From Ruditapes philippinarum (lineage: Eukaryota), in contig NW_026861498.1 in the NCBI RefSeq assembly GCF_026571515.1, positions 62,001 to 126,000 on the forward strand: a stretch of DNA of 64,000 nt. Reading direction: 5' to 3'. Below, piece after piece: positions 1 through 40,200 of the stretch (position 1 is its first letter; each line of letters begins with the position of its first letter). The notes below the pieces were generated by a model, which saw only the letters and a program-made list of their open reading frames with translations, was not told the DNA's origin and ran no database searches. The position numbers and the translations under genes are program-made.

Positions 1-406
1 TAAATTTGAAATAAAATAGAAAAAAACAGTGTTTATGATTGATACATTATATTAATCAATATTATTTTATATATTTTACAATAATGAGAAACATTAGACC
101 CGGCTTTAGTTATTTTGTTTTTCTCCATTTTATGCAACAGGTTCTTTACGAGTAAAAATATTTTTAGTTAGAGTTAAATATTGGTACAAATGTATACTTT
201 TTTTATATATTTGCGTGTTATTATTGTCTCTCAATGATTTTACCTGAATTTGCTAGATTTTATAATAACATATTTTAAGTTTAACTTATTGTTATTTAGT
301 TATTATGTCATTGATTTAAATGTGTTTAGTATTATTTTGTTTGTTAGTTTATTTCATCATAATTTCCTAAGTATATGAACTTTCAATATTGTCCTTTTTG
401 CAACAG

Positions 407-11200: not shown

Positions 11201-14200
11201 AGGATAAATTTCCTCTGAAGTAGATAATAAGAAGTTTTCATATCTTGATGAAGCTATTAAGTTTTGAGTCTTGGTTAGAAGCTGTAAATTCGCGAGTGTA
11301 TGTTAAATATGAAATATTAATTCATTTACACATACAAAACTACAATTATGAACGCACTGTAAAAAGGTAAAAGGTTTAAAATAATATTATTGATTGTAAC
11401 AGTCATTTTTATATGCCGGAAAGAATTTCGGGCATATTATGATATATACCCCCTGAAGTCCGTCTGTCTGTCCGTCCGCACTCACAGGAGAGTAATTATG
11501 TGGCTAGAGGGACAATAGGTAACTGTTCTTTCTCTTTGATGTCATTCATTCCGTAATGCTTTTATGTGGCTATTTTCTTTTGTGTGGCTAAAAAGAACAA
11601 TAGAGAGAACAATAGAATAGCCACATAATTACTGTCCTGTGAGAACTTCCGTCCGTCCGTCCCTCCGTTAGCAATTTGGTTTCCGGAGCATAACTTAAGT
11701 TCCATTTGGCCCACATTATTCAAACTTCATAGGATGATTGTCCATATTGGGTAGAAGACCCCTATTGCTTTTGGGATCACAAAGTCAAAGGTCAAGGTCA
11801 CTATAAATTAATACTGAAATCAGTTTCCGGAGCATAACTTGAGTTCCATTTATCCCACAATATTCAAACTTCATAGGATGATTGTCCATATTGGGTGGAA
11901 GACCTCTATTTGTTTTGGAATTACAAGGTCAAGGTCACTATTACCTTTAAACTGAAAACAATTTCCGGAGCATAACTTAAGTTCCATTTGGCCCACAATA
12001 TTCAAACTTCATAGGATGATTGTCAATATTGGGTAGAAGACCCCTATTGATTTTGGTGTCACAAGGTGAAAGGTCAAGGTCACTATTACCTTACAACTGA
12101 AAACAGTTTCCGGAGCATAATTTAAGTTCCTTTTGTCTCAAAATATTCAAACTTTATAGGATGATTGTCCTTATTAGATATAAGACTCCTATTAATTTGG
12201 GGGTCACAAGGTCAAAGGTCAAGGTCAGTATTACCTTGAAACTGAAAACAGTTTCCGCTGAATAACTTAAGTATTAATCAACCTACAGCTGTAAAATTTT
12301 AAAGGATGAACAGTCCAATACATGACCTCTATTGATTTTAGGGTCATAAGGTCAAAGGTCAGGGTCACAATGATCTTTACATTGAAAATTTGTGGTTGCT
12401 GGAGAATAACTTAAGTTCCATTTGGCTCACAGTGTTCGAACTTCATAGGATGATTTTCAATATTTGGTATAAGACCCCTATAGATTTTGGGGTCACAATG
12501 CCAAAGGTCACTATTGCCTTAAAACTGAAAACAGTTTCCGCTGTAAATTTTAAAGGATGAACAACCATGTCCAATATTTCCATCCGTCGTAGCATTTTGA
12601 CTTACAAGATAACAACTTGATGGTGGTGCTTTAGAAACAGCAACTGTATTTATATGAAGGTTCTTCAGCTATAAAGGAGGATTGCTTTTTGAAGGAGGTA
12701 ATACTTAATTTAATTTTCCCATGTCTTACAAATGCTTCATCCTTACTAAAAAAACACTTTCAGGCATATAATGCTCCGCCTAGCGGTGCTCTTGTTAGAC
12801 TTGTTTGGCTTGACCTTATAGGGTGATACGTTCCGTGAACAGTGATCTCCATTTTGAACTTTTCTTTTTATTTATATTCTATTCTTGTATTTGTAAATTT
12901 CATGGAACGAAATTAATAGTTACTAAAACAGATATGACTCATACTTCAATCAAATCGAGCCTGCAACATTTACCACTTTGCCGTGTTTGGGCGTTCTAGA
13001 AGGATACTTTATTTTCCTTTTTTATACCTTGATTAGGTATTATTCATAAAGCATCGACTTATGAATTCCTTTAGTGAATATCATACCTTGACAATTACCT
13101 ATTACACTGATAAATATTTATATATATCGCAGAATGTGAAAACATGGTTGTCATTCCCCATGGAGATATGGTACTTCATGACGATGAGAACACAAGCGAA
13201 GGTGCCCTTGCTAATATAACTTGTGACGATGGATATGATTCAGACAAACCCACCATTGAATGCTTGAACAATGGAAAATGGGAAAATGCTACATGTCATC
13301 CAAAAGGTTTTTGTCATTTTACCTTGATAATTGTTATAGACCTTTAAACAATGCCTTTATTATTATCACAATCAAGCTTCTTTTTTGTTACACATATCTG
13401 AATGACTGCCCGCTGCCCTTGATTAGAATGATAAAAACCTACTGGTCTGTTCTTACACTATTAACATACTACGGCATTTGTGCCGTATTTAATTTCTAGT
13501 TAACATGGACGGTATCGTAAATATTTATTAATGTAATTACGTATTAAATATCGGGAAATATCATTGGTGCCATCCATGGATACGTCTATGAATTCTGGTA
13601 TGAAGTGTTTACCTTAGGACTGTCACTATTTAGTTTTTCCCTCCTATAGCAACATAATAGTTGGAGTTTAATCGGTCATCAAACGTGCTTATTACGCTTA
13701 TGCTTAACGTCATTCAAATTAAAGCGATGCTGCTGCTTTCGAATTGTAAAAATCTACAGTTATATATACGTTCCAGATTGTGGAAATGTATCAGCCATAT
13801 CAAATGGCAAGTATGAACTGAAAGACGAGGCCAATACAACATTTGGTGCTATGGCGACTGTAACATGTGTTAAAGGATATGAGTCGGACACTAATATAAT
13901 CACATGTTTAGATAATGGACAGTGGTCCGATTCCACGTGCACTGCTAAAGGTTAGTGGTTATTTGCTAAATTAAATAATAAATGTTCGACTACGTTACAA
14001 TTTATTGCAATGTGCTTTCTGTTACTTTGTTCTTGTGACCTTTGTTTTATTAAGTTAAAATGAATTGAACGATCGTGCACTGGTTAACAAATATATGTTT
14101 TACATTATAAAGTTTACAGTTACCTTTGCATGAAGATACCGATAGAGTGACCCATTTTAAAAGACGGTAGAAGATTTCTAACAAAAATCATATATTTCTT

Positions 14201-17200
14201 AATTTTAAGTTTCGGATTTAAAAATGAATTGCGGCATTTATAATTATAAAGTGTAAATCACCACACACGATGACAAACATGTCATACTCATTTGAAATAG
14301 ATGATTTTTTTTTAATTTCAAACATTAAGGAGTATAAAGGAAAACAATAATGACTTCTATCTGATTAGTTGATATAAAGTTGTGTATATTCAAGATTGTG
14401 GCAATGTCTCTGCGTTATCAAATGGCATATATGTGCTAGACGACGAAGGCAATACAACATTTGGCGCTGTTGCGATTGTGATATGTGACAAAGGATATGA
14501 ATCTGATAGTAATATCATCATGTGTTTAGATGTAGGTCAGTGGTCAAACTCGTCATGCACAGTCAATGGTAAGCAATTATTACGATCATTTTTGGAATTG
14601 CTGATAATATTATTATTCATATATAATTCAATATAACCTTTTACTTGCGATGACAGAATAAAACACGGCTACAATAAATTTGATCGTTCAACATTGATTA
14701 ATGCAAATATGCATGAAACTTTACAAACAAATGGTGATATGCCTTTAAAACGCAGTTGCTTGCGATGCTATTAGAAATGGCAAGCATGAGTGAAAAGTAA
14801 TAACTAAGAAAATCGTAAAGTTTTATTGCTTTTAAATGTTTATAACGCTTTATGCACCCGGCGATGGTGGCAATGAGAGCAATGTTACATTAAGAAGCAG
14901 TATAACAAAATTTTGGTTTAGGTTATATCACTTAAGTGATATGAAAACAACAAAAAAGTACAAACTTTATCGCCGCAGTTTGATCGTGTCTGTTCATAAA
15001 ATACTGCTTGTCTCGACCTATGCATGAATCAACAGACAATGGTATGCACATTTCTGTTTAAATGAACAAATCTGTGTTTGCATTTTCAAGATTGTGGAAA
15101 CATCTCTACTATATTACACGGCAAAATTGTACTGAAAGACAAGGCCAATACAACGTTCGGTGCCATGGCAACTGTGATATGTGACAAAGGATACGAATCC
15201 GTCAGAAACAATATCACATGTTTAGATAACGGACAGTGGTCTAGTGCATTATGTTCTGCCAAAGGTGAATACATTGACGAAAATGAAATGAATGTTTTCT
15301 AAATCAGAGACAAATATAATATTTCTTAAGAGGTTATAAAAAAATAGCGATAGCATCTAGTGTTTTCAAGTTATGGAACCGGAATTTATATACGTGACTT
15401 GGAAATGACATTAACAAATTAGATCTCCTTAATTTGTACTTAAAAAAGAACTAATGTCTGGCTTAAGTACAAGAAACATAGCTAAATTATATAGAAATAT
15501 TGATCAATAAACCATTCAGAGATTGTTCATACATTAAGTAGAATGATTGATTAAGTTAAAACCATTTTTTATCAAAATATTTACACAGCAACGCTTGATT
15601 TCATAAATGGATCATTTCTAAACGCTACAATATTTAATTTAACACTATTTTGCATGTCCTTATTATCATTCTACCGGAAATCAAGTTAAAACCTATTGTC
15701 ACATGTTTTCAAGATTGTGGTAGTGTCTCAGCTATATCGAATGGCAAGTATGTCTTGGAAAACGAGGACAATACAACTTTTGGTGCTATGGCAACTGTGA
15801 TATGTGACGAAGGATATGAGTCCGACAGTAACGCTATAACGTGTTTAGAAAATGGTCAGTGGTCGAGGGCATTATGCTCTGCCAAAGGTAAATAAAATGA
15901 CGAAAATGTAATGAATATTTTACTAAAACTATGACAGTGACAATTTCATCATGTCTTAATAAGCTATAATAAATCGCGCTTTAAGAGATAACATCTTTTA
16001 AGTTTATGAACCGGAATTTATATACGTGGCTTGGAAATGACGTGAACACACTAGATATCCTTGATTTGAATTAGGAAAAAATACTATTAGGTAAATTATT
16101 CGGAACTGTTTATATAGTAAATGAAATAATTGATTACGTTTAAACCATTTTGTAGCAAAATGTATACACATCAACAATATGTTTTCATAAATGGATAATT
16201 TCTAAACGCTAAAATATAAATACTATTTTGCATGTCCTTATAATCAATCTACCGGAAATCATGTTCAAAACTATTGGATTATTTATAATGTCACATGTTT
16301 TCAAGATTGTGGCAGTGTCTCAATTATATCAAATGGTAAGTATGTCTTGGAAAACGAGGACAATACAAGTGTATTCATACTATAAGCAGGTCAATAAACT
16401 ATTGTGAATTATTACAACGTTATATGTTTTCAAGATTGTGGCATTGTCCCAACTATATCAAATGGCCGATATACTCTGGAAGACGAGGGTGTAACAACAT
16501 TTGGTGCCATGGCAACTGTGATATGTGATGAGGGATATGAGTCCGACAGTAACGCTATCACGTGTTTAGAAAATGGTCAATGGTCGAGTGTAATATGTAC
16601 TGTCAAAGGTAAACACTATGTTTTATTTTCATTCGATATAGATTTCTTAATAAATGCTGTTTAAAGTTGAGAAAATATGTGCAAATGTTTGACTTGATGA
16701 ATGTCACAGACATAATTGCAGTTTTCTTTTCATATGAAATCAAACATACTTAATGGAACAAAAGTAAGTTTAAATTTATTATTCGGTCATTTATACATGA
16801 AATATACATGCACCACGTTTAACAAATTAATGTATAAAGTAAGGCAAATGTTATATATTATTGATATTATTAAATTCACTTGCAGTATTATTTACACTAT
16901 GTCGTCAATATGTTAATAAATGAATATCATAAAAATGATTATGTATACAAATATGTATATTACCGTAGTTCTTTTGATAAATGCATAAGAAAACGCAAAT
17001 ACTATCCGGAATCTGCTTCAAAATAGTTTGATTTGTTCACCATAAAAAAAACAACTGATAAAAGATTACGCAGCATAGGTTATTTTTCATATAATTTTAA
17101 TTCACATACTAGTGTATTAGCACGTCAATAAACTATTGTGAATTATTACAACGTTATATGTTTTCAAGATTGTGGCATTGTCCCAACTATATCAAATGGC

Positions 17201-20200
17201 CGATATATTCTGGAAGACGAGGGTGTAACAACATTTGGTGCCATGGCAACTGTGACTTGTGACGAGGGATATGACCCCGACAATAACACTATCACGTGTT
17301 TAGGAAATGGTCAGTGGTCGAGTACATTATGTACGATCAAAGGTAAACGATATTGACTTTTAAATTAGATTTATATAAAATTAGTGTTAGATATCTTAAC
17401 AATTAAAGTTATACTATTGTCATATTAAATAAATGAATTAAATTAAACATAATAACATTCTTATTATGTTTTCATTTATAAGCAATTGGCAAATATTTAC
17501 CTTACAATACAAAACCTTTATAGATTAAGACAAAATAACAAAAACAAAACACTTTTGGACATCTTTTAATGTTATAGATTGTGGAAATGTACACCAAATT
17601 GGTTTTGGTACAGTAACACTTTCATCTAGTGTTACAACCTTTGGAGCTGTCGCTACTGTAGCTTGTGAAACTGGTTATACCGCATCTCTTTCCACTGTAG
17701 AATGTCTTAGTACAGGAAAATGGGAGGCGGCTACATGCAATATTATAGGTGTGTTTTGATTACTGTTTATATTTTAAATTCCACTGATTTACCTTTGTAT
17801 GTCTAATTGAATGTAAGTTAACGGGGGACTTACAAACGTTTCAATTGTGTTCTGTTGGGTGAACCATACGGTTTAGACTTTGACTATTTAATATCAAAAT
17901 TGAAAGGTAAAGAAAAGGGTATTTATAAAGAGATTCCACTATACATTCATGCCGATAAGTGTTCACATTATGCTAACATATTTTTATAATGATCTTCTTA
18001 ATGACTAATCTTTGCACTATATGTATATAAAAATAGTAAGTGTATATTTAATGAAATTATATTATTAAGCCAAAATCTTAAACGCTGGTCACAGTTACAT
18101 GTATATACACATACTTGTAATCTACATCAAGCATATTTGCACAGTCACATTTTTTTAGCCATTCTTTAAACGTTTGAAGAATATTATTTGTATATGAATT
18201 GCTTCAGATTGTGGAAGTTTATACCAAATTGATAATGGTACAGTGTCCCTTTCATCGATTTCATCGACTGTAACAACGTATGGGACTGTCGCTACTGTAA
18301 CGTGTGATGCTGGTTTTAATGCGTCCCAATTAGCTATACAATGTCTAAGCACAGGGAAGTGGCAAGTTGCAACATGCAATAAAAAAGGTTGGTTGCTGAG
18401 ATTTTTGGGAATACACAATACCATAGTTTATCTGCGTTTAGATAAAAAAAAATCTTGTTTTGGGGGATGATCATGCCTTTATACCTCAGTGAAGGTCCTT
18501 TTACGTTGTTTTTTTATGATTTTGGTCTACATCACATAAACCAATACGATAAAGGTAATCGTGACCGCCTTCATCTTCTCTATTACGATAAGAACATTTA
18601 GTTTACATTGTGTTCACTTGTGTTACATTCGAACTGCTGTTACATAAGTTAAGAACTCTGTTCGTTTGATTTATATATTTAATACACAATTTCTTTTATT
18701 TTGTTGAAGTATTTAATCTCTAGCAGTTGTTACTTACTATCAGTGCTGGAGTGGATTTCTGTTCCTTACGTTGTAAAGACAGTTTGAGTTTTGTTTGCCT
18801 TGACATTTTTTAATTGTTTAATTTCAATTTCAATATTTGGAATAATATCAAAAATCATCTGTACATATGATTAAATATTTTTTTTTAAAATTCTATTAAG
18901 ACATGTTTCAAAGAAGATCGAATATGCGATATGATTGCTAAATGTCTAGATATTTATGTTAATTTTTGGAACCATAATATCTCATGCTACACAATGTAAT
19001 GTATAGACTTGAAGCACTGTTTGAGTAGAGATTACACTTTCAGCAAGATGCCAAAATAGCTCTCATGATCTGGTACACTAAATGTTTTATCAATAGCATG
19101 AATTATACAACTGATGTATATCCTATTAAAGATTGCGGAGAGCCAGTGATTCAGTATGGCAGTGCTACATTAAAAGAAGTTTCAATATCAACTTTTGGTT
19201 CCGCGGCAGAAATCAAATGTCAAGAGGGATATCAACCGAAGAAAACGACAATAAAATGTGAAGAAACAGGCTTATGGGAAAGCAGTGCTTGCGAATATAT
19301 TTCAGGTTATTTTTGAACATTATTTGTTTAGTATTGTTTTTGAGAAAAAATATTTCAAAAGAAGCATTTTAATATTATGTATTAATCTGAGAACACATCT
19401 TGTATCATTGCTAATGCTGCAGAAAGAGAACAAATATTTAAAGTATAATTATATTGTTATTATATTTCAGACAAGGGGAACGGCAGTACTATCGCAATAG
19501 CAATAATTGTATCGGCGTTGTTGATTGTAAGCATTGTAATTGTTGGTCTTGTCTACAAGAAACGGCAAAATCGGGGAAATATGTTTATAGATGGACAAAA
19601 TACTAATAACATTAGGGTATGCATTTGAATCAGCAGGAATACAAGCTAATAGCTAAGTCATATTAAATGTACAGAGTCAAATATATTCAGCAAATTTCAT
19701 TGTTTAGGATGTAAGTCTATATGACCGTAATCACTAGGCAAAAGTTATAAGACAAAATATCGTTAACATAAGGAGAGATACCGGTACATAGATATCCGAA
19801 ATGCTTTTTTATGACGAAATATAAAAACTTCGAAAAAGGTTTCATAAACATGCAGCAATAGCTGTGTAAATACATTAATGACGGTTGTCACAATAATCGT
19901 CCTTACATTCTGCATTTCCTATACTATACTATACTATACTATAATGCCTTAAGCCTAAAAGAAACTTAGTTTGCCTTAATACTCAAGTAATGCTTATTAA
20001 ACGAGTACTTGCACCAGTCATTAGATTTACAGTTTATATCTAGATATACTCGTATCTATCTTTATATGAATTGACACAAATATGAGTAAAGAAATAAGAA
20101 ACTCTTATCAATATTACTTTCCAACTTTGTATCAATATTTTACAGAATGACCGTGTGTATTTCAAACCTACAGATGCTCTAGAAGATGAAGAAAGACATT

Positions 20201-24940: not shown

Positions 24941-26899
24941 ACTTATATCCTCGTTAACTACGTACTATATAGCATAATATGACGTCACATGGTGTTATTT
25001 CATCTATCATCCTGATAACGAATATTAAATACCCGGTCAATATTTTCCCCAGGGGCAAATAATCTTTATGGACTTTACGTAATGTTTGGTTCTCTCTCCT
25101 GATAAAAAAACACCAAAATACAATGACGAATGTGTTAAAAATGCATAATTGTTAAAAAGTACATTTAAATGTTGGTTCAGCTCATCATTGGGTGTTATTT
25201 CAGTTCTCCGGTTGCTAATGTGCACTTTTACATTTGGAGACATTGTGTTATTTTTATAATATTAATAAAAGGTGCAGAAACTTACAAAGATGGTCTATAT
25301 TAATATGCATCATTCGCCCCAGACTCTTCTTATCACTTGAATGAAACCGAATCCTATCTATGCTCTCTTTCAGTCGCATAACCCATAAAGTAAACATAAA
25401 AATGTATTCTACTATAAATGTATTATACAAAAAGTTATGTTCAACAGTCTGTGCAAATTTACTATAATTTCAAACTTCCTCTTTCGAAATTGTTTAAACG
25501 TGAAAACCACAAATTAAAGTATAAAATGTCATACGGTTTCAAATGTTTTTAACGTTTTTAAACTATTTTATCTCGCATAGGTGAACCAGGTTATAACAAC
25601 TTATTAGTTTACCGACTTGGTATTTATATTATCATTTTATCACGTAACTCGTCATAGCACAAAATCCCAATCTGACTTAAGTTCAGATCTATTTATTTCT
25701 ACCATGACGGCCGTATATGTTTCGCCTTCTTTGTAATTCGGATTTCCCGAGAAAGTTATTTTTAGCCATGCAATCAAACCGGTGTTTACAGATAGGCATC
25801 AGAAGAAGTATCAAAATACCTTTATCCGTGGATTTTTTTTATTGTTTTTGTTAGAAAAAAATGTTTGAAGTTTCAACTTGGAAAAATAGATTCAATTTCA
25901 GTTTCTGTACCTTAAGTTAAATATGGAGTGATACCTTAAATATTTTATTTTAACGGTGCACGTGTATTTCGTGGGTTAGTGAGGTATTAAATATAGTGTT
26001 TTCGCGGGTTTTCTACACTCGACGCTTGCATTTGGTAGTACTTCAAGAACTTGTTTAAATACGAAATTATGAGTGTTGAAGAAAATCGGTATTCTCAGCC
26101 ACGTGGAGAATCGTCACAAAGAACAGAAATTGTTGACGAATTGAGGAATAATTTTGAATCTAAATTCAACGACTTCAAGAGGAGCGTTCAGACTGATACA
26201 GAGTGGATTGCAGAAGCTACAAGAAAAAGGTTAGAAAAGATTCATCTGTTACTCTAATAGGTTTATCTAACAATAAACAGTATCAATTCAATTGTGAACT
26301 TGATGATGTGCTTGACAGTATTGATAAGGCTTTTTAGCTAAGACATGCAGGCAAAACTCATGAGTATATTTCTGAAGCAAAACATCTTATCAAACGTAGA
26401 AATAAACCGATCAGAATTTCGCTGACAATTCTCCTTCCGGTTTGGGCACCATTCAAGAGTATGAGAAATTAGATGTGGCTAGCAATTCTGATGACGATAA
26501 AATAATTCGTAAAGCTGAAGACCAGGCCAAAGGTCGTTTCGAAAAGGCCTAACTGTCTACTAATTTTAACCAAAGCTCTCAGTTTAATTTTCGTAGCTTT
26601 CGCCGAACACCGTAATCAAGATATGCCATGGCTGGCGGATCCTCCTACCAACAACAACTTCCCTCAACAGTCGTTTGCTTCAAATGTGGACAGTTGGGAC
26701 ACATCGCATCTGGATGTACACGGGTCAGGACAGGTCCATATACAAAGCCCATCGGTTCCTCAACAGAGTCAAGAGCACCTGAATGTGACAAGCAGGAAGT
26801 CAAGATTAATAAACAATTAATCACAAGATTTTCTTTTGAAGATGATAAGTATTGTTTTTTGGATGACTTGCAATTTTTGTCATCATGAGATATTTTGTG

Positions 26900-28800
26900 A
26901 ATATACAGAAAGAAATATCAAAATTTCTGATTTATCAGTTAAAGGTCGATTTAAACAAGCTTTAGATTTTTGGGAAACTTCGATACAACCTATCGATGAT
27001 ATTCTATCTTGCATAAAGAACGGCTATGTTATTCTATTCTTATCTCAGCCACCAATTTTTTTTTTATGAGAAACAATTAGTCGGCACAAGAGAATAGTGA
27101 TTTTGTAGGCAAAGCAATTGAAAATTTGTTACAAAAACAATATGTTTATGAGCTGCCTTTTTTTACCTCATAATATCCATCCGTTGTCCGTCGCTACAGA
27201 TTCTTCAGGGAAAAAACGTTTGATTCTCTATTTAAGTGTTTTGCATAACTATGTTAAGAAAGGTCGTAATAAATTTGAAGATTACAAGGTTGCCACGGAA
27301 TTACTTTTTCATTGTGGTTTTATATATAAATTTGACCTTTCAAGTGGTTATCATCATATTTCAATCAAACCAATACATCATTCTTACCTTGGTTTTTTAT
27401 GGATTTTTCATGGAAAAAATCATTACTTTGTTTTCTCCGTATTGCCTTTCGGTTTGTCGTCCGCTCCATTCGTCTTTACTAAATTGTTTAGACTTTTAGT
27501 TAAGTTTTAGCGACAAAAAGGGTTAAGAATTGTTCTGTTTCTGCATGATGAGTGAGGTCAATTTGAACATGCATTGTGTGATGCAAATTTTGTGAGTTCT
27601 ACATTACTTAAAGCTGGGTTTTTAACTAACAAGGAAAAATCAGTGTTTGTCCCTGTTCAAAGATTAGAGGGGTTAGGCTTCATTTGGGACCTTCAACATG
27701 GGACTTTGAAAATACCCTATCGTCGTATTTAAAACATTTTATCTTGTATTAGGGTTATGAAGAGTTTTTTGTCCGAGGGTTACTGCTAGGAAGTTGGCAC
27801 AACTGGTAAAATAATTTCTATGATGCCTTTTCTAGGAAACGTGGCTTTATTACAAACAAAATCTTTTTATCAGTTAATAGAAAGAAGGGTTTCCTGGGAT
27901 AACGAAATGAATATTTCAGAATGTTATTTAACTGTTCAGTTCTTGGAAAGTCAATTGTCTTAGCCATTCAATAAGAAGCTGTTCCAAGACTTTTTACCTT
28001 CAGTTATTGCATACTTTGATGCTATTAATGTTGCGGAAGCAGCATTTTTAGTAGAATGTGACAAGGTTAAAGCTCATCGAGCGTGGACAGAGTTTGAGCA
28101 AAATCAGAGTTCTACTTACAGGGAATTATTAGCCATTCATTATGGTCTTAACAGTTTTGTTAGTAAACTGGCAGGAAAATAGTTATTTGGTACACTGACA
28201 GTATAAATTGTGTCAGTATTATAGAAAAGGGCAGTTCAAAATCTAATTTGCAAGAGTTATCTTTACATATATTTCGGCTTTGTGTGCAAAATATAGTATT
28301 TATTTGGATATTAATTGGATACAGAGGGATAATAATAAAGAGGCAGACATGTACAGCAAATTGATAGATTATGATGATTATGGGATATCACAGGATTTCT
28401 TTAGTTTCATAGATCATTTATACGGTCCACAAACAGTGGACAGATTTGCTAATGATTATAATAACAAACTACCTCGTTTTAATTCTTTATATTTCACTCC
28501 TTCATCTGAGAATGTGGATGCTTTTACAGTAAATTAGGGATCGAAAAATAACTTAACTGTTCCTCCAGTCTATTTGATACCAAAGGCTTTAAACTATTTA
28601 TTATATTCTAAAGCTAATGGTACATTAGTCGCCCCTTACTGGCCTTCGAGCCCTTTTCCCCGATGATTTTTGGGGAAACATCAAATCTTAAGCGATTTGT
28701 TTGTGAAACACCTTTGTTTAATGATCAAAAGGATATATATGTTCAAGGCAGAAACAAAGAAACTATTTTTGGTCTACGTACTTTACTAGCAAGGTAATTG
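26900..28800 (+). pseudogene. Disrupted RT-RNaseH-methyltransferase ORF of the YR retrotransposon
   Basis: ORF fragments 26836-27069, 27118-27510, 28280-28537; the catalytic YLDD position reads FLHDE* at about 27538-27555. Confidence 0.85.
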
Positions 28801-28944
28801 TTGCTAGAATAGAATGTTGTTAGTTTTGACTCATATATTTTATGTTTTATGATTGGTTAAAAGGTCATTTTTTGTGAAAAGCAATGCTATAATAATTAAG
28901 CATAATGAAATATTTTGTTTTATTATTGTTTGTCAATTTAACAG

Positions 28945-29944
28945 GCATTTTAACCAGTCAGCGTTGGTTAGATGTACAAGAAATGTGTACATTTTTGCCT
29001 AACAACCAGGAGCTTTTCTCAGAAGTGAGAGACGCCGTGATGTCTTGCAAAGAACAATCTACGATGCGTATTATATAAATATTCTTTTGACAAAGTTTTA
29101 AAATGGTGTACGCAATTACAGTTTTCTTTTTTTTGCCTGCCTCACTGTATTTAGTGTCTTTAATGCAGTACGAGAATGAGTGTTGTGGGAAATCAAAATT
29201 AAATACAGCGTTTTATGCTATTAACTGTGCTCACGAGTTAGCTTCTTAAGAAAATCCATGTAAAGACAATTGGTTAAAATTATGTTTGGAAGGTTGTGTC
29301 AGGAAAGTATGTCGACCAGAGCAGAAAAAACAACCTATTTCTCCTGATATTTTGAAAATATTATTATATACTTTTGCTTCTAAGAATTGTTATCTGGGAA
29401 ATTTGAGAATAGTTACCTTGTGTATTTTGTGTTAAGCTGGGTTTTTTACGAATTAGTGAAGCCTTAGATCTAAAATGGCCCGATGTTGAATTTTTTTATT
29501 CTTATTGTTCTTTACACATAGAAAAGTCTAAAACTGACGTTTATAGAGATGGTCAGAATGTACTCATTGCTAAAACAGGAAACACATCATGGCCTGTAAC
29601 TCTTTTACAAAGATATTTACACGCTGCGAGGAAATCTGATGAATCTACTGACCTATTCTCTCTGGAAAAAAATCTTATATATTGAGAAATCCACCAAATA
29701 AACCTTTATCATATATAGAACTAGAGAAATATTTAAAGACATGTTAACTAGATTAGGATTAGATTCGTCTAAGTATGGCTTACATTCTTTTTGATCTGGT
29801 GCCGAAACTGTAAGTGCTTACTTTAAAACTAGTGAAAGACTGTGGAAAAGACATGGTCGGTCGGAAAGTACATTGGCCAAAGACGTCTATGTGGAAGATT
29901 CTTTGAAGGACCGTTTGTCTGTGTCATTAAATCTACATTTATAA
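28945..29944 (+). pseudogene. Disrupted tyrosine recombinase ORF
   Basis: R..H..R..H..Y-type motifs: RISEAL, HIEKSKTDVYRDG, YGLHSF*SG, WKRHGR, KDVYVEDSLKDRLSVSLNLHL*. Confidence 0.85.
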
Positions 29945-30189
29945 TTGACACTGTTATTAATCAAAAGCCATGTGTTTTGAAACTATTACATTATTTTGCG
30001 ACTTACAATTATCACATCAAATTGTTGTTTGAAAACTATTTCATCCAATAGTGATTTGAAACTATTACTTTATATATCAGTGATAATGTTTATAACCATA
30101 TATGAATCATTTGTAAATTAAGGAAGATTATATTCTTTTCATTCTGTTTGCATATCTTTTTACATCGAATGGTTGCCTTGAATCGAAGT

Positions 30190-30448
30190 GTGCCCCTCGT
30201 TGGGCGGAAGAATTGCCCCTCAATAGGCGGAATTATTGTCCCTCGTTGGGCAAAAGTGATGCCCCTCGTTGGGCGGAAATGTTGCCCCTCGTTGGACGGA
30301 AATGTTGCCCCTACGTGGGCGGAAATGTTGCCCCTCGTTGTGCGGAAGTGTTGCCCCTCGTTGGGCGCAAGTGTTGCCCTCGTTGGGCGGAAGAGTTGCC
30401 CCTCGTTGGGCGGAAGTGTTGCCTTCTGTTGGGCGGAAGTGGTGCCCT
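30190..30448 (+). repeat. GC-rich ~22-bp minisatellite (TGTTGCCCCTCGTTGGGCGGAA), about 12 copies
   Basis: Head-to-tail units seen directly; no unique spacers. Confidence 0.93.
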
Positions 30449-31165: not shown

Positions 31166-31229
31166 ATGGGGATTCGTGTATTTATCATTTGCTTTGTGAA
31201 TTTGGTTTATCTCCTTAGTTTTAACAGAG
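31166..31229 (+). CDS. Gene 3 signal-peptide exon
   Basis: MGIRVFIICFVNLVYLLSFNR then G|gtgagg; phase 1. Confidence 0.82.
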
Positions 31230-34200
31230 GTGAGGAAATGTTGATTTTTTATTATAATAACAGAATGTGTGTTAATATCATTGATGATAGTAAAGTGAGT
31301 GTGCATACATATTATTGTAAGGTTGGATTGCGAAATGATATTACAATAATTGCACTATTATACACTGCATTCTACGATCATACCGAAGAGAACTGACTAA
31401 AATATATGTTCTTAATTTTGATCAAATATGCAATCTAAGAAGTTAAAAGTTGAACATTAATCATTGGTAATTTGATAATTTTTGTATGCGTTTATATATT
31501 TACGTAAAATATGTTAGTAAGGTTATATTAAAATAAAGATAATGATTCGTCAAGAGACAAAATTCGTTCCACTGTTTATGAAAATGTAGCCTATAAAACA
31601 AACACACATCACATTCAAACCATGTCCGCCTGTCAGTATCTGCAATGTTTAAGTAATGAATACTTATTAACAGACAACATCACATGAAAAGGATCATGTA
31701 TTCTCTATTTGTTATGCCTCTTCACAAGGGTAAAACTTACAAATATTTCAAGTCTGACACAAACCCTATGAGCAACGACCACCTCTCAATTACAGCCAAT
31801 GTTGGACTATCCGGCTGCTGGCTGTTAAACTGTGCATTGTTGGCTGTCTAACTTCAATTTTTCATTTTGCTATTCCAATTATTGAAAATGTTCAGTTTTG
31901 TCAATCACAGTCGGGCAGAAAAAAACTTTCCTTGTTCACTTCATAATACTTTACTTTAAAACAGATTTTCAGAATTTTTATGAAAATAAGCATGACTCTA
32001 AAGGCATGCTGCTTTAACGTGTACGTGAAAAACCATAAAATGATATTTCATGTTAACTTATCTATCTAAAAATTATCTATAAAATAATCATTCTTTTACA
32101 TGTATTCTTGTAGTGCTAGGTCAATACATTCCAAAAGAGGAACTACGAAACAAGACCACTTGTGACTTAAAAATTAATTTGGATATAACCTGTGGCAGTG
32201 ATGGTGTTATTGTCATACAATCGTTCTATTTTTACTATCATCCGACTTGTGAAGCAACATGCTGTGACTTCGATAGTGCTCATTACAAAATAGGGGCAGA
32301 CAGCGATGACATCACAACTGTAAGGCGTTTGTGCTCCGGAAGGACTGATTGCAGTCTCGAACCGCTTGAAGGTATTCGAGATTTTGGCGTAGAAGCAAAA
32401 CCTCAGGAGCCGTCATACGTTGTCATTTATCACTATTGTGTACCTGGTAAGTAGAATGGTAACTTACAATACCTGGGAAAGGTGTATTCATTAAAACACC
32501 GAAATAACATAAAAATTGCAGACACGGTACATGAGGAATCATAAAAAATGCAACATCCCTCACGCTCCCTAGCACCGGCTTGAGCAGTACTTAATTATTT
32601 AAACTAAAAGTGCTGCAATCAATAACCCCGAAAGACCAGAAAAATATAACAACACTGAAGTGAAGTACGAGGCAACTTTTTGCAGCTGCCAAACGGCAAG
32701 TTGGTGGCAATCAAATCGACACATCAGTGCAGACCAAGATCAGCCTTGTATACGGTGTAGACTGATCATGATATGCACTGTTCGCTATTTATAGTCAGTA
32801 ATTATTTTGAAATGTTCACTAAAAATGATGAATATTTTTGTCAAGATTAGATAATGTGCAAGTCTATTGTTGGATATCATTCAAGGACGTCAAAATATAA
32901 AGAATATTCGTCTAAAAATAAATAAATAAATAAAATAGATTGTTTATTATGAATGTATCTTAATGCCATAAGCTTAATTATAGAAATTTCCGATAATTAT
33001 GACGTTGTCAGCTTTTTTTCTTTTTGCAATCGAAAATAAATATGATTTCATTTAAAATTAAAAATAAATGACGTTATCGTTTACAGATGAAATTTAATGT
33101 CATTTAAAACGTTATTATTTTCTTTTGCTCTCGTTTAGAGTCGAGAATAACAAGCTGCTCAGGAACCAGCCTTGTATCTGCGGGAGAACCGATATATCTC
33201 ACAAGCAACGATTACCCACGTGTGGCGACAGAGGACAGCTCGTGCACTTGTTCAGTAGAAGTTTTCTCGTGCACGTCACGCGTTAACAGTTATATTATCG
33301 ACGCTGACATGTATTTAGATCAAGTCAATTGTGAACAGAATATTGACTTTCTTGATGGGAGAAGCACATCTTTGGACAAAATTGATTGTAGAAGTTACTC
33401 TGTTAACGAAATAGTTACGAAAAGTTTTGCAACAAATTATATAAAGATTGATTTTAATGATAACTCTGATCAGAATCAAGAAGGGTTCTTCTTTCTCGGA
33501 TTTGGAGGTAATGTGGATTTTTTATGTAATTTCAATGACATTGCTATAAATTATACATTTCATTTTGTGATACAAAACATAGTCGTTACCTGATAAAGGC
33601 TCAAACCTATGGCACCTGTGTTAAGAAGCAGTCATGTTTTTGTCCCCTTTTTTAAAATTGCAATATGGCTAAACATTATTACTTTACAGCAGCAACATTG
33701 AAACACTCACTGGAAAACGTATTGAGACATATACGAACAAACCTGTAAAATATTTTCAGCCCTTTTTACAATTTACTAGATTACTGTATATAGGTAAATT
33801 CGTTCTATGTGTAAAAATTGTTTTTATCTTAACTTCAGTGACTGAAGAAACTGCTTTTAAACTAAGCTGTTCATTTGAGGAGCAGACAGTATGTATGGGT
33901 AAGTATTAAATATTCTTATAAATTAAAGTAGCAATAACAGTAACGTGGAGAATTGTTATGTCATGATAGTATTTACACAACTCTTTATTCCGCATTTACT
34001 GATACATTGTTTTACTGATACAGCTTAATGCTTCGTGCAATTACCAATCAAATGTATTTTTCTTCTTAAAAAAAAATAGATGAAATGGGAGACAGTATGT
34101 TTCATGTTTAGTTAATAAGCAATCTTTATTTGTCTTTTGAAAATCAAGCCAGTGAATCTTGAGCACAATTTTCGTAGCAATATTCCTCATATCTTCTTAC

Positions 34201-37200
34201 CGTTCTATTCTTGAGAACGCATCACATGAGTTATGAAAATTGCATTTGCTATTTGTAAAATTCGATACAAGTAAAAATAGTAGCAATTTTTGCATGGCAA
34301 AGACAAATGTCTTGTAGCTAAGAAAAAATCCATTTTATAAACACGGAAAATTATAGTAATGTCATATTAGATTTAAAGAGAATAACGTAAACAACCAAAG
34401 TTTGATAAAAACGAAATTTAAAAAAGGATGTTTCTAAATAAGAACGTTGGTGCAAAAAAGAGTGAGACTAAAAAAGGATTGGAGCAGTACACTCAATATC
34501 GTATTCCGGTACATACCAGACAAGAGGTAACCGAGCCTGCAACATATTCAATTTTGACATGTTGGGCCTTCTTTAGGGATTCTTATTTTCTCTATTCTAT
34601 TTGAATGTTTAAATGCTAAAATTTCGCCTTTTCACCTTAAGAATGAACTTTAAAATGTCTGATTCATCTTTTCACACCGATTAATGTATGATAATTAATG
34701 AAAAATGTAATAATCGGCAAAAAAACGATATTTGTTTATTTTGTGATCATGATTTCTGCAAGCGTCAAGAGGTACTGCTCCAATCCTGTATTGAGTTAAA
34801 TCCATAAAAAATGCACGGATTCGAAACAAGTACAGAGGGAAATAATGAAATAATGTAGTACACTGAAAATCCTTAAAAAAGGTAATGAACCTTTATATGT
34901 AAAAATACTTGTGTTACATTTGACAAAATGACCAACGATAAGATTTAACAATGGTTATTAATCTTGAAAAATAGGACACTGTAAGATGCATGTGTTCCTA
35001 AATGAACTTGTCGTGTTTCTGTAAGGGAACTCAATTTCTAGCACCAACATCTACGTAGTACGTAGGCATTATATACATGTATCTATCAATGCATGATTGA
35101 TATGCAAAAATATATGAAAATTATAAACATTATATATCAACTGAACACATCAATGATCGTATATTCACTATAATATACAGGACACTTTTGAATATCATTA
35201 TCTGAGGGTACCTGATAAGTTTTAATTTTTGGTGTGTTTTTCAATATTTAAAAGTGAATGGATAAACTGATAGGATCATAAATATTATTGGCGGTCTCGT
35301 TACTTTAAACAAACTTTTAAAACTCGGCAAGTTCTTGTGTAAAATAAAATGTTTACTAGAAAAATGTAATGAGAACTGGACGCAATGTAATATTTTAATA
35401 ATAAATTGCCTTATGGAGAACAAAAAAAACCTTTTATTATTCAAACAAAACATTAAGTAGAGAACAAAAGCTGATAAACTACGTGCGTAAAACTGTAATA
35501 ACGTACAGGGGACCCATATTTCATCAATCCAATATGATATGTAAATTAAAAGTTGTTATTTTAATCCAGTGTTGAAATGCTATTTCTGATATAAAATAAG
35601 TTATTTTAGGTCTCCTCTTCATCAAAATTGTGTATTTTATCGTTTCAGATTGCGGCACACCAAACAACATTCATCATGGGACTATTTCGCTTGTCGAAGA
35701 TGGAAACAGCGGTTATGGCGCGTTAGCCAATGTCGTCTGCGACAAAGGTTATGAGTCCGCAGATAAAACAGTAAGCTGTTTAGATACGGGTTTGTGGAAT
35801 ACAACCGAATGCAACCTTAAAGGTAGTCAATTGTTTACATGTTCATGCCTCTTTTTATGATTGATTTCAAGGATGTTTATTATATCTTCATTATGTATAC
35901 AAATTATCGAAGACCTTGTCCACTTATATCTTGTCAAGAAACACTACTCAAGAAGGTATTCATTTCTTATCTGTCTTAAATTCTGTACGACGTTGTGGTG
36001 TAACTGGGTTGAATACCTATAATTTACAAATTTCAAATTAAATTTGCTATGTAAATGGACCAGCGATTATTTGTTTTCAGTTATATAATCACAATTTTAC
36101 CGACATTTTTCTGAAATATAATATCTGAACTATAATACAAAGGTTAATATATAATAAATATTCTAAGTGATTTATTTTTATTTCAACAGACTGCGGATCA
36201 CCCTTCAACATATCCAATGGTATAATCACGCTTGTCACCGATGGAAACACTACTTATGGCGCAAAAGCAAATGTTATATGCGACGAAGGATTTCAAGTGA
36301 AAGGTAAGGCAACAACAATTTGATACATGTATTGCAATATGTAATCATGACAAACCATATTAATGATTATTGATTACCCAATCAACATTCTTCGCTACGC
36401 GATCAGCATTAGTCATCATCATTTGTAGGTTTGTTTACGTCTTCCGTCGCTATACGATCATAACTTTTACAACGCAATCGTAATTCAATTCATTAAGTTA
36501 CCATCGTACATCGCTATACGATAACTACTTTGATTACTACGCGATCATTACTGTTGCTACTTTATCACCATTCGTCACAATGTGATCATCACTTTTACAA
36601 CGCGATTATTGTTCATCACTACGTTATCATCATTCACGCGATCATCATTTTACAATACAATAATCCTTTGTCTTTACGATATCATCATTTGTCTTTACGC
36701 CATCATAATTAGTCTAAACGCCATTATTATTTGTCACTATATTGTCATAATTTGTTTTACGCTATCATCATTTGTCTGTAAGATATAATCATTTGTATTT
36801 ACACAATCTTCAATTGTTTCTACGCTCCCTTTTTTGTCTTTACGCTTTCATCATGTGTATCTACGCTATCATCATTTTCCTCTTCATAATCTTCTTTGTT
36901 TCTACGCAATTATCATTTGCCTCTACAAGATCTTTATTTGTTTGTACGCTATCATCATTTGCCTCTACATGATCTTTACTTGCTAGTACGCTATCACCAT
37001 TTGCCTCTATATAATCTTTATTTGTTTCTACGCTATCATAAATTTGTCTTTATAATCAACCTGTTTGTTTGCATATCTAATAAGATACTTTCTCTTAAAT
37101 AGGAAATTGCAGTAGTAATGAATTTCAATGTGGCGACGGTTCATGTCTCCCAAACAGTAAGAGATGCGACAGCTTTCCTGATTGTCCTGACGAACTTGAT

Positions 37201-40200
37201 GAATTACTATGTTGTAAGATAGCTGACATTTTATATTATGCCATCAATAGTGAATTTTTTAGGGTTTAATAAAATAGATTATTTTTAGAGAGAAAACTTA
37301 TTTAGAACAATGTTTGAAAGATTTTTCACAGTTCGTCTGACAAATAATTTCTTCAAATGCAAAATGATAAACCTTTAAACAAATTTTGATAATGAAGTAT
37401 ATTTAACATGTGTTATATTATCGTTTTGTTCTCTTGATTTCAGCGGATCAAACAAATTGTGCCGAAGGTCAGAAATTATGTGGCAAGTCATGTGTAGACT
37501 CAAACTACACTTGTACAGGTATGTAAAATTGTCAGAAATAGAAAATTTAGTTAAAGCCGATTTTGACCTGGACTTATTTTTTTAGGCATCTCGATGATCG
37601 AAATTTAAAATTTGCAAAAGGTCGAATTTCGAGCAGGAGTTGAATAACGAGCTAGCTTGCAGATCGAAATTCAAAAGTACAAATGGCCAAACCATATAAT
37701 TATGTCATGGTCAGGAATTAACTCTCTTGTTTTGATTAACTAGCATTCTAAACGATAGATGTAACATAATTAAATATTTTAATTCAGTGTTTGTGGCATT
37801 TCAGATAGTGGAACTGATGAGGAAGAAACAGAATTTAGTAATGGTATTATTAGTTGCTTAGTGATAGGAAGATGGGAGATTGTCCAGTGTGTACCAAAAG
37901 GTTTTTAGCTAAAGTTTCTAGCTTATGTAAAATTACACTTCTATGCCATCCTTTTTAACATTTGGGAAACATTTAAAGGTTTTTCATTTAGATACACATA
38001 CATTGATATTAATCAAACATGCTTTAAATATCAACAATACGTGACACACTGCACGATGAACGACATTTTGAATATTAGGACATAATTCTACTTTCAATTG
38101 ATCTTTGTTTCTGTCAATATGTGTTTCATTGTGTACACTTACAAAATGTAAAGTACTATTCCGGTGCAAAGCTATCATTTCTTCAGTATTTTAAATTTAA
38201 TATGATATATTTTCTGAACAAAATCAAATGTATCAATTTTAAGAATACCTATTCCAAAACGTGTATAATACATGCCATATTAGAAATCTGACTCGTCAGC
38301 GCTATCGAAGACGCCAATTCACTGTTATACATATATTGCAGTTATATGCATATTTACATTAAAACATGCAATTGAATGGGAAGGCACATATTGTAGTTGA
38401 CTCCAAAGTGTTAGGTGATCAATGTGGTCAGTAAGTTAGACCAAACATTATCAAATTTATTCTGTTTTCTATTCTTTAATAAAATCCATCACAATTATTA
38501 TCATTGTAAAGTCAAGTGAAATAAATGGTATTGAATAGTTTCTTTTATTATTTAGACTGTGGTACGCCGGCAGGTCTTCAGTATGGTTCCTTTTCCCTGA
38601 TAGAACCAGGAAAGACTATTTATAGATCTATGGCTCACGTCACGTGTGATAACGGTTTTATAGCATCAGTCGATCAAATTTCATGCCTGGCAAATGGATC
38701 ATGGGCGTTTGTTAGTTGCTTTGTTGGTAAGTATTTGCTATGTAATTCTAACTGATCATGGGAGTTTGTCAGTTACATTCATTATAACTGAATTCTAATT
38801 AGTGGGGGCCTATATTATATTGAAGATTTATGGTGAAACAGTGTGATTTCATTTTTTTTATTATTACACTTCTATAGATTGTGGAGCTCCATATACGATT
38901 AAAAATGGTACCATCAATTTAGAACGTTCTGGTTTCACAACGCTGCAATCTACCGCTAACGTGTCATGTGACACTGGATTTGATAGGTCTACGGACTCGA
39001 TAAGTTGCCTGGCAAATGGTACTTGGGAACAAGCGTCCTGCATCATCAAGGGTAATAAATTTCATATACATTTCACATGTGATGTAATAGATAACTTAAA
39101 AAATACACATTATTTCGATTTTAAAACTCCTTTTCGATTAGAACATAATGTCAGCCTAATTATTCCTTGTGAAGTTAAGAAGTTGTTATAAACATACGTT
39201 GAAAATATACAAGCAGAAATCACAGTTAGCAAAATCGGTCTGAAATATTTGTATTCTAGATTTTTTACACGTTTCTTCTATAGCACTTTCATTTTAAATT
39301 TCCGGATACTTAATGGTGAAGTTTGTCATGAGTGGTATCATAATGTTGATTTGTCAAGGGAGAAAGCTACTATGTACACATTTATCATAAATCAGTTCTG
39401 TTCATCAACTTTGACAATACTTATGTATATCATATATCTTAAGATTGTGGCGAGCTGGCATCAATTGATAATGGATCATTAACTCTGACAATCCCTGAAA
39501 AGACAACTTACCAATCAAAGGCAAATGTTACGTGCAGCGACGGATTCGACGAGTCTCTTGAGTTTATACAATGCAAAGCGGATGGAACATGGCAAGATGC
39601 TTCTTGTATTATAAAAGGTAAACTCAAAGCTAGTTAAAGCCCGTGTTCAACTGCTAATAAAATGGATCTTGAACATCCTTATCTTTTTATTATTTTATGT
39701 TTGCTCTTATTCTTTGACTTCCTTTGTCTTTATTTGTTGTTTATTGTAACACTTTTATTATTCCAATATAGATTAATGTCGTTTGTAAAATTTCATTTGA
39801 TACTAGTTAATAGTCCAAAATACGTCAAAACTTTCATTTCAATTTATGGCGGAAAAAAAGTTTACATTTTGTGTTGGAAGAACCATTATTGAATCATTTC
39901 ATGCAATTAAAATTCTGTGAGATTGACTAATGCCATTGACTATTTTCTGATGTTCTGTTTTTGAAATTAACTGCTTTGTTATTGAAGCAGGGAATTTAGC
40001 TAAATGTTATTTATCTTTGCGATGACATTATACAAGAACATTTTCAATAAAAGTATAAAACATTTTAGATGATGTCAAATTATAGTGTTTCGTATCCTGG
40101 AGGTATTAAAACATTGACAATAATAGTCAGGTTTTTTTTTAATTTCTTCTCAGATAATTTACTTTTTGAAAATAGTCCCATAAATGTTGTCTCAACCATT

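Follow-up and report, generated by a model that had tools for sequence, protein, structure and literature searches.

A Sushi/CCP domain split around an LDLa and four-cysteine cassette in a lectin–CUB–CCP gene of the clam Ruditapes philippinarum

Exon shuffling is commonly taught as the addition of class 1-1 modules between existing domains. Modules can also lie inside one another: in laminin, L4 is placed between the third and the fourth cysteine of a standard eight-cysteine LE domain (PMC5338690). Here we analyse a 64,000-nucleotide stretch of the genome of the clam Ruditapes philippinarum (RefSeq assembly GCF_026571515.1, contig NW_026861498.1, positions 62,001 to 126,000 of the forward strand; hereafter the window, in whose coordinates all positions are given), which contains a gene whose second Sushi/CCP domain (CCP2) is encoded by two half-domain exons with an LDLa exon and a four-cysteine (4-Cys) exon between them. 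In this split-CCP gene, as in laminin, one module sits within another that is small and held together by disulfides, and the extracellular rod to which they belong is left unbroken. The two cases differ in that the clam host is a CCP β-sandwich and its guest a 37-residue LDLa followed by a 4-Cys module, whereas the laminin host is an LE domain and its guest a β-sandwich of roughly 200 residues. The clam case is furthermore limited to venerid clams and is built from separate, individually skippable exons.

The second short consensus repeat (SCR, or CCP) of the vertebrate complement regulators C4BP alpha and CR1 is likewise encoded on two exons, whereas its neighbours are single-exon (PMC2118859, PMC2189269). 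The clam gene resembles these genes in that it is the second CCP that is divided between exons, and such an intra-module intron is a possible site for exon shuffling. Nothing lies between their half exons, however, and the clam split is in phase 1, with no evidence of intron homology. The vertebrate split is in phase 2, within a Gly codon after the fourth strand. A sushi fold assembled from non-contiguous sequence has a further parallel in IL-2R alpha, whose sushi domains exchange β-strands according to PMC3894449, which cites Rickert et al. 2005; in that receptor two sushi domains swap strands, whereas the clam protein has one sushi interrupted by foreign modules. Nested domains and split CCP exons are known already. 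Our literature searches yielded neither an account of an LDLa within a Sushi/CCP domain nor a paper naming the Mercenaria loci or protein identifiers discussed below; the LDLa-in-CCP layout is already present in automatic annotation but, to the extent of these searches, undescribed.

The four exons lie on the + strand at 36190-36303, 37103-37213, 37444-37518 and 37805-37900, all of them phase 1-1, with lengths that are multiples of three and with AG/GT splice sites. The first (half-N) encodes only Cys1 and Cys2 of a CCP, as read from the sequence, with strands 1-3. The last (half-C) encodes an 11-residue linker of acidic, Ser and Thr residues, then Cys3, Trp and Cys4, with strands 4-5. Between them lie a six-cysteine LDLa exon (37103-37213) and a 4-Cys mini-module exon (37444-37518), and the whole is flanked by two single-exon Sushi domains, CCP1 (35649-35822; Pfam Sushi E 3.8e-7, positions 1-56) and CCP3 (38556-38726; E 2.9e-5). 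The part looped out of CCP2 therefore consists of V-K-G, the LDLa, the 4-Cys module and the 11-residue Asp/Glu/Ser/Thr linker, about 75 residues in total, close to the roughly 70 estimated in an initial annotation of this DNA. That annotation had also read Cys1-Cys2 in 36190-36303 and Cys3-Trp-Cys4 in 37805-37900, an assignment that sequence, profile and RNA junctions confirm, and had placed a six-cysteine LDLa exon and a four-cysteine exon between them in frame and in phase 1, which the sequence, the Pfam match of the LDLa exon and the AG/GT sites bear out. Its remark that a second gene has an unsplit CCP at the same position holds as well: the tandem paralogue upstream (head at 8678-10459) encodes a four-cysteine CCP2 in one open frame on the + strand, at about 13777-13947, at the matching place. 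No LDLa-like frame was seen elsewhere among the open frames of the window, the tandem paralogue included.

Profile comparisons indicate that the two half exons are complementary parts of one CCP. Half-N matches Pfam Sushi (PF00084) at positions 1-35 of 56 (E 7.5e-5, 23.5 bits, cut-off 20.7). A local profile based on 47 CCP exons in the window places half-N at positions 1-35 (48.9 bits) and residues 11-31 of half-C at positions 37-57, so that the break between them drops a single profile position. The 2517-residue public model of the gene product, P0080, contains 36 CCP matches, among which half-N and half-C are the only partial ones, and they complement each other. The nested unit (half-N, LDLa, 4-Cys and half-C) occurs as a single copy in the genome, as does the half-C exon. 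The locus thus has what is expected of a nested domain: complementary host parts, a guest that is Pfam-significant, one spliced molecule and the same order at four loci in two genera.

To document splicing, we mapped contigs from three runs, each belonging to a different study, on 33100-39099. They contain eight consecutive GT–AG junctions (last and first exonic positions 33507/33839, 33898/35649, 35822/36190, 36303/37103, 37213/37444, 37518/37805, 37900/38556 and 38726/38878), with high depth on exons and low depth in introns. The five junctions from CCP1 to CCP3 are each supported by two to three runs, with 36303/37103 and 37518/37805 found in three and 37900/38556 in two, and a single 505-nt contig runs from CCP1 through half-N and the LDLa into the beginning of the 4-Cys exon. 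No junction skipping any of the four exons, including 36303/37805 and 35822/38556, appears among the 15 of 21 junctions listed for the three runs, and the depths of the inclusion junctions are similar to those of neighbouring exons. Constitutive skipping of all four exons, which the initial annotation had named as an outcome incompatible with its proposal, is contradicted, since the contigs join the exons serially between CCP1 and CCP3.

Six isoforms of the split-CCP gene are present among public models (P0044 and P0080-P0084), five of which carry half-N, LDLa, 4-Cys and half-C. No isoform without the LDLa exon exists among the public models of four loci from two clam genera. Isoforms annotated without the 4-Cys exon or without half-C do occur, which indicates that these exons can be skipped. 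In one of the runs, X1, the LDLa exon differs within its first 20 bases (37103-37122) and reads G-N-C-E-S-N-Q instead of G-N-C-S-S-N-E (Ser to Glu, Glu to Gln); in the CUB exon of this run, about 5% of the bases are different. Most likely the LDLa variant is allelic, and such differences suggest either high allelic diversity or a mislabelled close relative. A named Ruditapes philippinarum protein agrees with the genome at 93-97% identity when compared exon by exon, as expected if the DNA is from that species or from a very close relative.

The same split was also to be sought in related species, as the initial annotation had advised, and we searched public models with the CUB exon and with two regions. 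In the chromosome-scale assembly of Mercenaria mercenaria, three loci show the same nested order. All four pieces are present in every isoform (13/13) of a gene named 'SVEP1-like' and in model P0047; at LOC123551041, isoform X2 is without the 4-Cys module, whereas X1 and X3 are complete. When the window protein is compared with its Mercenaria orthologue, identity reaches 68% for half-N, 68% for the LDLa and 70% for half-C, compared with 60% for CCP1, 49% for CCP3, 48% for the 4-Cys module and 42% for the acidic linker. By these identities, the CCP2 halves and the LDLa are the most constrained parts of the region. The nested layout is thus real, transcribed and conserved. In P0047 (3059 aa), the head formed by lectin, CUB and nested CCP2 begins near residue 2230, behind a long CCP run; this model probably fuses two adjacent cluster genes.

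We next consider whether the two halves close into one CCP. An AlphaFold2 model of the Mercenaria isoform X2 (785 residues, 15-row family alignment) has a mean predicted local distance difference test (pLDDT) score of 65.6, with 81-84 for half-N, 71-81 for the CCP part of half-C and 80-88 for the neighbouring whole CCPs. According to DSSP, half-N of this model contributes three strands and half-C a further two, which together correspond to the five strands of CCP3 and CCP4, and the insert leaves at the turn between strands 3 and 4. Such a hairpin turn is a favourable place for an insertion, because its two ends are adjacent. We submitted half-N and half-C of the window itself to ESMFold2 as two separate chains, without alignments. 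The interaction prediction score from aligned errors (ipSAE) was 0.35, 0.34 and 0.35, against 0.05 for the best control, the partner pLDDT was at least 66 compared with 39-45 in the controls, and at least 91% of the contacts were common to the runs. Each half gained about 25 pLDDT points only with the other half present. In calibration, 51 of 78 solved complexes attained the mark, as did 2 of 108 mismatched pairs, and values up to 0.60 are unreliable unless the interaction is likely beforehand. Here the prior for closure is high, because the halves are exactly complementary and conserved. Foldseek and VIA structure searches with the 785-residue model confirmed multi-CCP and CUB folds, a result that cannot show the pairing of the halves.

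From these data we consider it likely that half-N and half-C close into one CCP. The initial annotation had held that the halves must rejoin and had proposed an AlphaFold model of CCP1-CCP3 as a check. Its claim is well supported indirectly by spliced RNA that contains every piece, by the complementarity of the halves, by their conservation in Mercenaria and by the CCP-like pLDDT and 3+2 strand pattern of the Mercenaria X2 model, to which the two-chain test adds weak support; closure itself we still infer.

LDLa modules hold Ca2+ and bind basic side chains of their ligands. The LDLa exon of the window matches Ldl_recept_a (PF00057) over positions 2-37 of 37 (E 1.8e-11, 44.5 bits). It has an Asp at Cys4+1, an Asp at Cys5-1 and Asp-Glu at Cys5+5/+6, so that acidic residues occupy all four (4/4) positions of the Ca2+ cage, which we take to map as in LDLR repeat 5. 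In this species the module can plausibly hold Ca2+ and bind basic ligand side chains. The Ca2+-dependent side arm beside the lectin/CUB head, as proposed in the initial annotation, would follow from such features of the sequence. The LDLa further carries an unusual signature, C-D-x-F-P-x-C, which is common to the paralogues of the family.

The 4-Cys exon reads C-x-E-G-x3-C-x3-C-V-x6-C, a motif that also stands behind the LDLa in paralogues from Ruditapes and from Mercenaria. We considered that this exon might be a remodelled LDLa. It has no Pfam match at E <= 1, and its likeness to the N-lobe of LDLa is no better than that of shuffled sequences; against an LDLa profile from 22 modules it scores 1.0-5.5 bits, values reached by 13-72 of 200 shuffles. 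We therefore regard the 4-Cys exon as a family-specific 4-Cys module.

Close relatives of this pair of exons are found in clam paralogues, in Mercenaria P0065 and on the Ruditapes contigs C4585 and C15770, that have the same head of lectin-like domain, CUB and linker, the C-D-x-F-P-x-C LDLa and the adjoining 4-Cys module. Their cassette, by contrast, stands between a complete CCP1 and a complete CCP2: the order CCP, LDLa (C-D-x-F-P-x-C), 4-Cys, CCP is seen in Mercenaria P0065 (XP_045162631.2), P0006 and P0015 and in the Ruditapes contigs C4585 and C15770. Because the same LDLa and 4-Cys pair stands between whole CCPs in these paralogues, the copy in the split-CCP gene can be read as a displaced family cassette. 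Its position inside CCP2 is seen only in the split-CCP gene and its Mercenaria orthologues. The view of the initial annotation that modules normally enter between domains thus holds within this family.

Two routes are suggested by the sequences. The cassette, together with its flanking splice sites, may have been inserted in one step into a CCP2 exon, or two internal deletions may have occurred in CCPs that once flanked it. Half-N ends in V-K/G and half-C starts with D-S-G-T, and both resemble the ends of ordinary CCP exons. We considered these ends as proof that the cassette had been transplanted together with the ends of its neighbouring exons and keep them as a weak hint, because K/G is also the phase-1 splice-donor consensus. 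No parent CCP was singled out for either half, identities to other CCPs reaching up to 57% and up to 47%. A relic of a lost C-terminal half in the intron after half-N was likewise considered and rejected: read-through yields G-K-A-T-T-I-stop near the place of Cys3, with nothing CCP-like beyond, and the resemblance is likely due to chance.

Taken as a whole, we explain the locus by a true nested domain, CCP2, formed around a displaced LDLa and 4-Cys cassette, and assign this reading a probability of roughly 0.75. The family's two-exon cassette would have landed inside CCP2. Strands 1-3 with Cys1 and Cys2, and strands 4-5 with Cys3, Trp and Cys4, would come from separate exons and fold back into one CCP, presumably closed by Cys1-Cys3 and Cys2-Cys4 disulfides. 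About 75 residues, made up of the LDLa, the 4-Cys mini-module and the acidic linker, would bulge from the turn of the strand 3-4 hairpin, and the LDLa would hold Ca2+ and present to the side, close to the lectin/CUB head, an acidic site that binds Lys/Arg. Since all pieces are phase 1-1, the frame is kept and each exon can be skipped singly, and exon skipping may tune this LDLa side arm.

Several observations weigh against this explanation. At the level of transcripts, the three runs are labelled 'RNA?', their RNA nature being guessed; it is argued for by the spliced junctions. In the one run that is certainly RNA, no raw reads fell on the split-CCP gene. Contigs drop rare variants and cannot give isoform proportions. 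Among the public models, P0044 omits half-C and joins the 4-Cys exon directly to CCP3, which leaves half-N without its Cys3/Cys4 partner, unlike the RNA contigs of two to three runs, in which the half-C exon is present. Searched alone, half-C does not reach significance in Pfam, and the 4-Cys exon likewise has no match. On the structural side, the modelled Mercenaria isoform lacks the 4-Cys module and its LDLa has a pLDDT of 39-64. The ipSAE values fall in the band classed as 'weak support', were obtained without alignments and concern a fold that is well represented among solved structures. CCP closure is, moreover, read from pLDDT, strand pattern and ipSAE rather than from contacts, predicted aligned error or disulfides. 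Finally, the LDLa copies of the Mercenaria orthologues have His or Ser at one cage position, before Cys5, and Ca2+ dependence may accordingly not be universal.

One alternative is that the two halves do not refold into one domain and are relics of two complete CCPs that once flanked the cassette and suffered internal deletions, leaving a composite cysteine-rich segment with other disulfides. The paralogues have exactly the order CCP, LDLa, 4-Cys, CCP that it starts from, the V-K/G end is ordinary and D-S-G-T resembles the normal D-C-G-T start with Cys replaced by Ser, so that old exon ends were maybe kept; the isoform model without half-C and the weak two-chain result also fit it. Two independent deletions would, however, need to leave exactly complementary remains (profile positions 1-35 and 37-57), and, compared between genera, the halves show the highest conservation in the region. 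AlphaFold2 gives both the confidence of whole CCPs, the gain of about 25 pLDDT points per half appears only with the partner, and the K/G exon end is weak evidence for the reason given above. We regard this account as unlikely. Less probable again is a splice-controlled complementation, in which the tether of roughly 75 residues would let half-C close on the half-N of its own chain or on that of a neighbour. The latter would yield a domain-swapped dimer, comparable to the strand exchange of the IL-2R alpha sushi domains, and the unpaired half-N exposed by a P0044-type isoform would capture the half-C of a partner. If true, alternative splicing would set the oligomeric state of the receptor beside the lectin/CUB head.

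The cassette exons might instead be mostly skipped, the main protein having a contiguous CCP2 with a short acidic loop and the nested form being minor or noisy. All four exons can be skipped in frame, a 36303/37805 junction would give Asp at the join, public forms lack the 4-Cys exon (Mercenaria X2) or half-C (P0044), and contigs lose rare variants and give no proportions. Neither 36303/37805 nor 35822/38556 is among the 15 of 21 junctions listed, though, and inclusion depths are like those of neighbouring exons; with an LDLa exon present in every public isoform of four loci and constrained to 68% identity between genera, we consider predominant skipping very improbable. An artefact of the gene model or assembly, which would have combined exons of different genes or an intronic pseudogene fragment, could be suspected from the minisatellite and satellite copy in the introns and from a decayed retroelement upstream. 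It is contradicted by spliced contigs that chain the exons in one molecule, by the same order in the chromosome-scale assembly of another genus and by the single-copy status of the nested unit, and we hardly credit it.

The nested CCP2 that we favour is part of a type I membrane protein composed of a signal peptide, a Cys-rich lectin-like domain, a CUB domain, about 35 CCPs, a transmembrane (TM) helix and a short tail. Its first coding exon (31166-31229, + strand) provides the start codon and a 21-residue signal peptide and ends in a phase-1 donor; this open frame corresponds to the N-terminus of the public models P0044 and P0080. It is followed on the same strand by a Cys-rich, SUEL/rhamnose-lectin-like head exon (32114-32448, read from the sequence), a CUB-like exon (33139-33507, with RNA junction 33507/33839) and a short two-cysteine linker exon (33839-33898) that leads from the CUB to CCP1 and has RNA junctions on both sides. 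After CCP3, about 32 further CCPs extend past the end of the window, and model P0080 then has a TM helix at residues 2382-2402 and a 115-residue tail.

The lectin identity of the first head domain is suggestive, as judged from its sequence. Exon 32114-32448 has no Pfam match to SUEL_Lectin (PF02140), and the paralogous exon at 8678-9067 reaches E 0.0027 and 18.5 bits, with a cut-off of 31.4. The CUB exon has a weak Pfam match (CUB_M02D8_5_2nd, E 0.012), and that of the paralogue matches Pfam CUB (PF00431) with E 1.5e-4 and 22.4 bits versus a cut-off of 21.4. In the predicted structure of the Mercenaria orthologue, the CUB region superimposes on the CUBs of C1s, MASP and Kremen with Z-scores of 11-12 and root-mean-square deviations of 2.3-2.9 Å over about 110 residues. 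The CUB fold of the head is thus confirmed on the orthologue's model.

The open frames read in the 64-kb window, which is AT-rich animal DNA with a GC content of about 0.32, show that its + strand is a tandem cluster of paralogous lectin–CUB–CCP genes. A partial upstream gene contributes a CCP tail and a TM exon (379-4702). The complete tandem paralogue follows with its lectin-like exon (8678-9067), CUB exon (10055-10459), CCPs (13114-19313) and TM exon (19449-19625), after which comes a tail exon. The decayed retroelement lies between the two paralogous genes, upstream of the split-CCP gene, at about 26000-29900 on the + strand, and comprises a zinc knuckle (E 9.7e-6), reverse transcriptase and RNase H-like fragments in different frames and interrupted by stops. 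At least three heads of the family occur in tandem on the contig from which the window is taken (C9985, positions 62001-126000), one of them upstream of the window. Contig C4585 has four heads, with LDLa and 4-Cys cassettes behind a complete CCP at two places (L016 and L019).

Repeats are frequent in and around the gene. In the intron that separates half-N from the LDLa, Tandem Repeats Finder identified a 21-bp minisatellite (36663-37049) of about 18 copies, with higher-order periods of 42 and 83 bp, which accounts for much of the intron's length. One copy of a dispersed and tandem, satellite-like repeat (37535-37683) lies in the intron preceding half-C; this repeat has >500 genome matches at about 80% identity, many of them in long tandem arrays with a spacing of roughly 65/130 bp on contigs such as C5322, C15013, C6203 and C701. 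Within the intron between the linker exon and CCP1, depth at 34500-34900 reaches thousands in all RNA-type runs versus tens to hundreds on exons; the segment is also covered by the raw RNA run, with many loose ends on both strands, and probably represents a dispersed repeat that is expressed, for instance a SINE (short interspersed nuclear element). A 23-bp tandem repeat of 11.5 copies at 30185-30447 produces false long open reading frames with Cys-Pro-rich translations on both strands and in several frames. In the intergenic region after the TM exon of the first gene, 5400-6040 consists of roughly 160-bp repeat units that are open on both strands and contain recurring 'KLQNFTKSRAITLKILK' frames.

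Names given to these genes by the NCBI pipeline refer to SVEP1 and CSMD. The clam proteins share long CCP runs with both, and with CSMD they share a TM helix and the presence of CUB as well; the clam CUB is single, however, and does not alternate as in CSMD. The precomputed Pfam lists of P0001 and P0044 contain only PF00057 and PF00084, with vWA, EGF/Ca-EGF and pentraxin domains absent. Given this absence, we interpret 'SVEP1-like' and 'CSMD-like' as name transfers and not as orthology. The locus also carries a warning for annotation, as a 'Sushi-LDLa-Sushi' string can hide a single Sushi domain, and model P0044 drops its second half.

One family of clam genes thus shows both outcomes for the same cassette, which stands between CCPs in the paralogues and inside a CCP in the split-CCP gene and so provides an in-family control. 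Two clam genera have retained the nested form, and the halves of the interrupted domain are more constrained than its intact neighbours. The family therefore offers a test case for how far small disulfide-rich modules tolerate an insertion at a hairpin turn and how such an insertion arises, and for whether splicing switches a side arm on a rigid CCP stalk.

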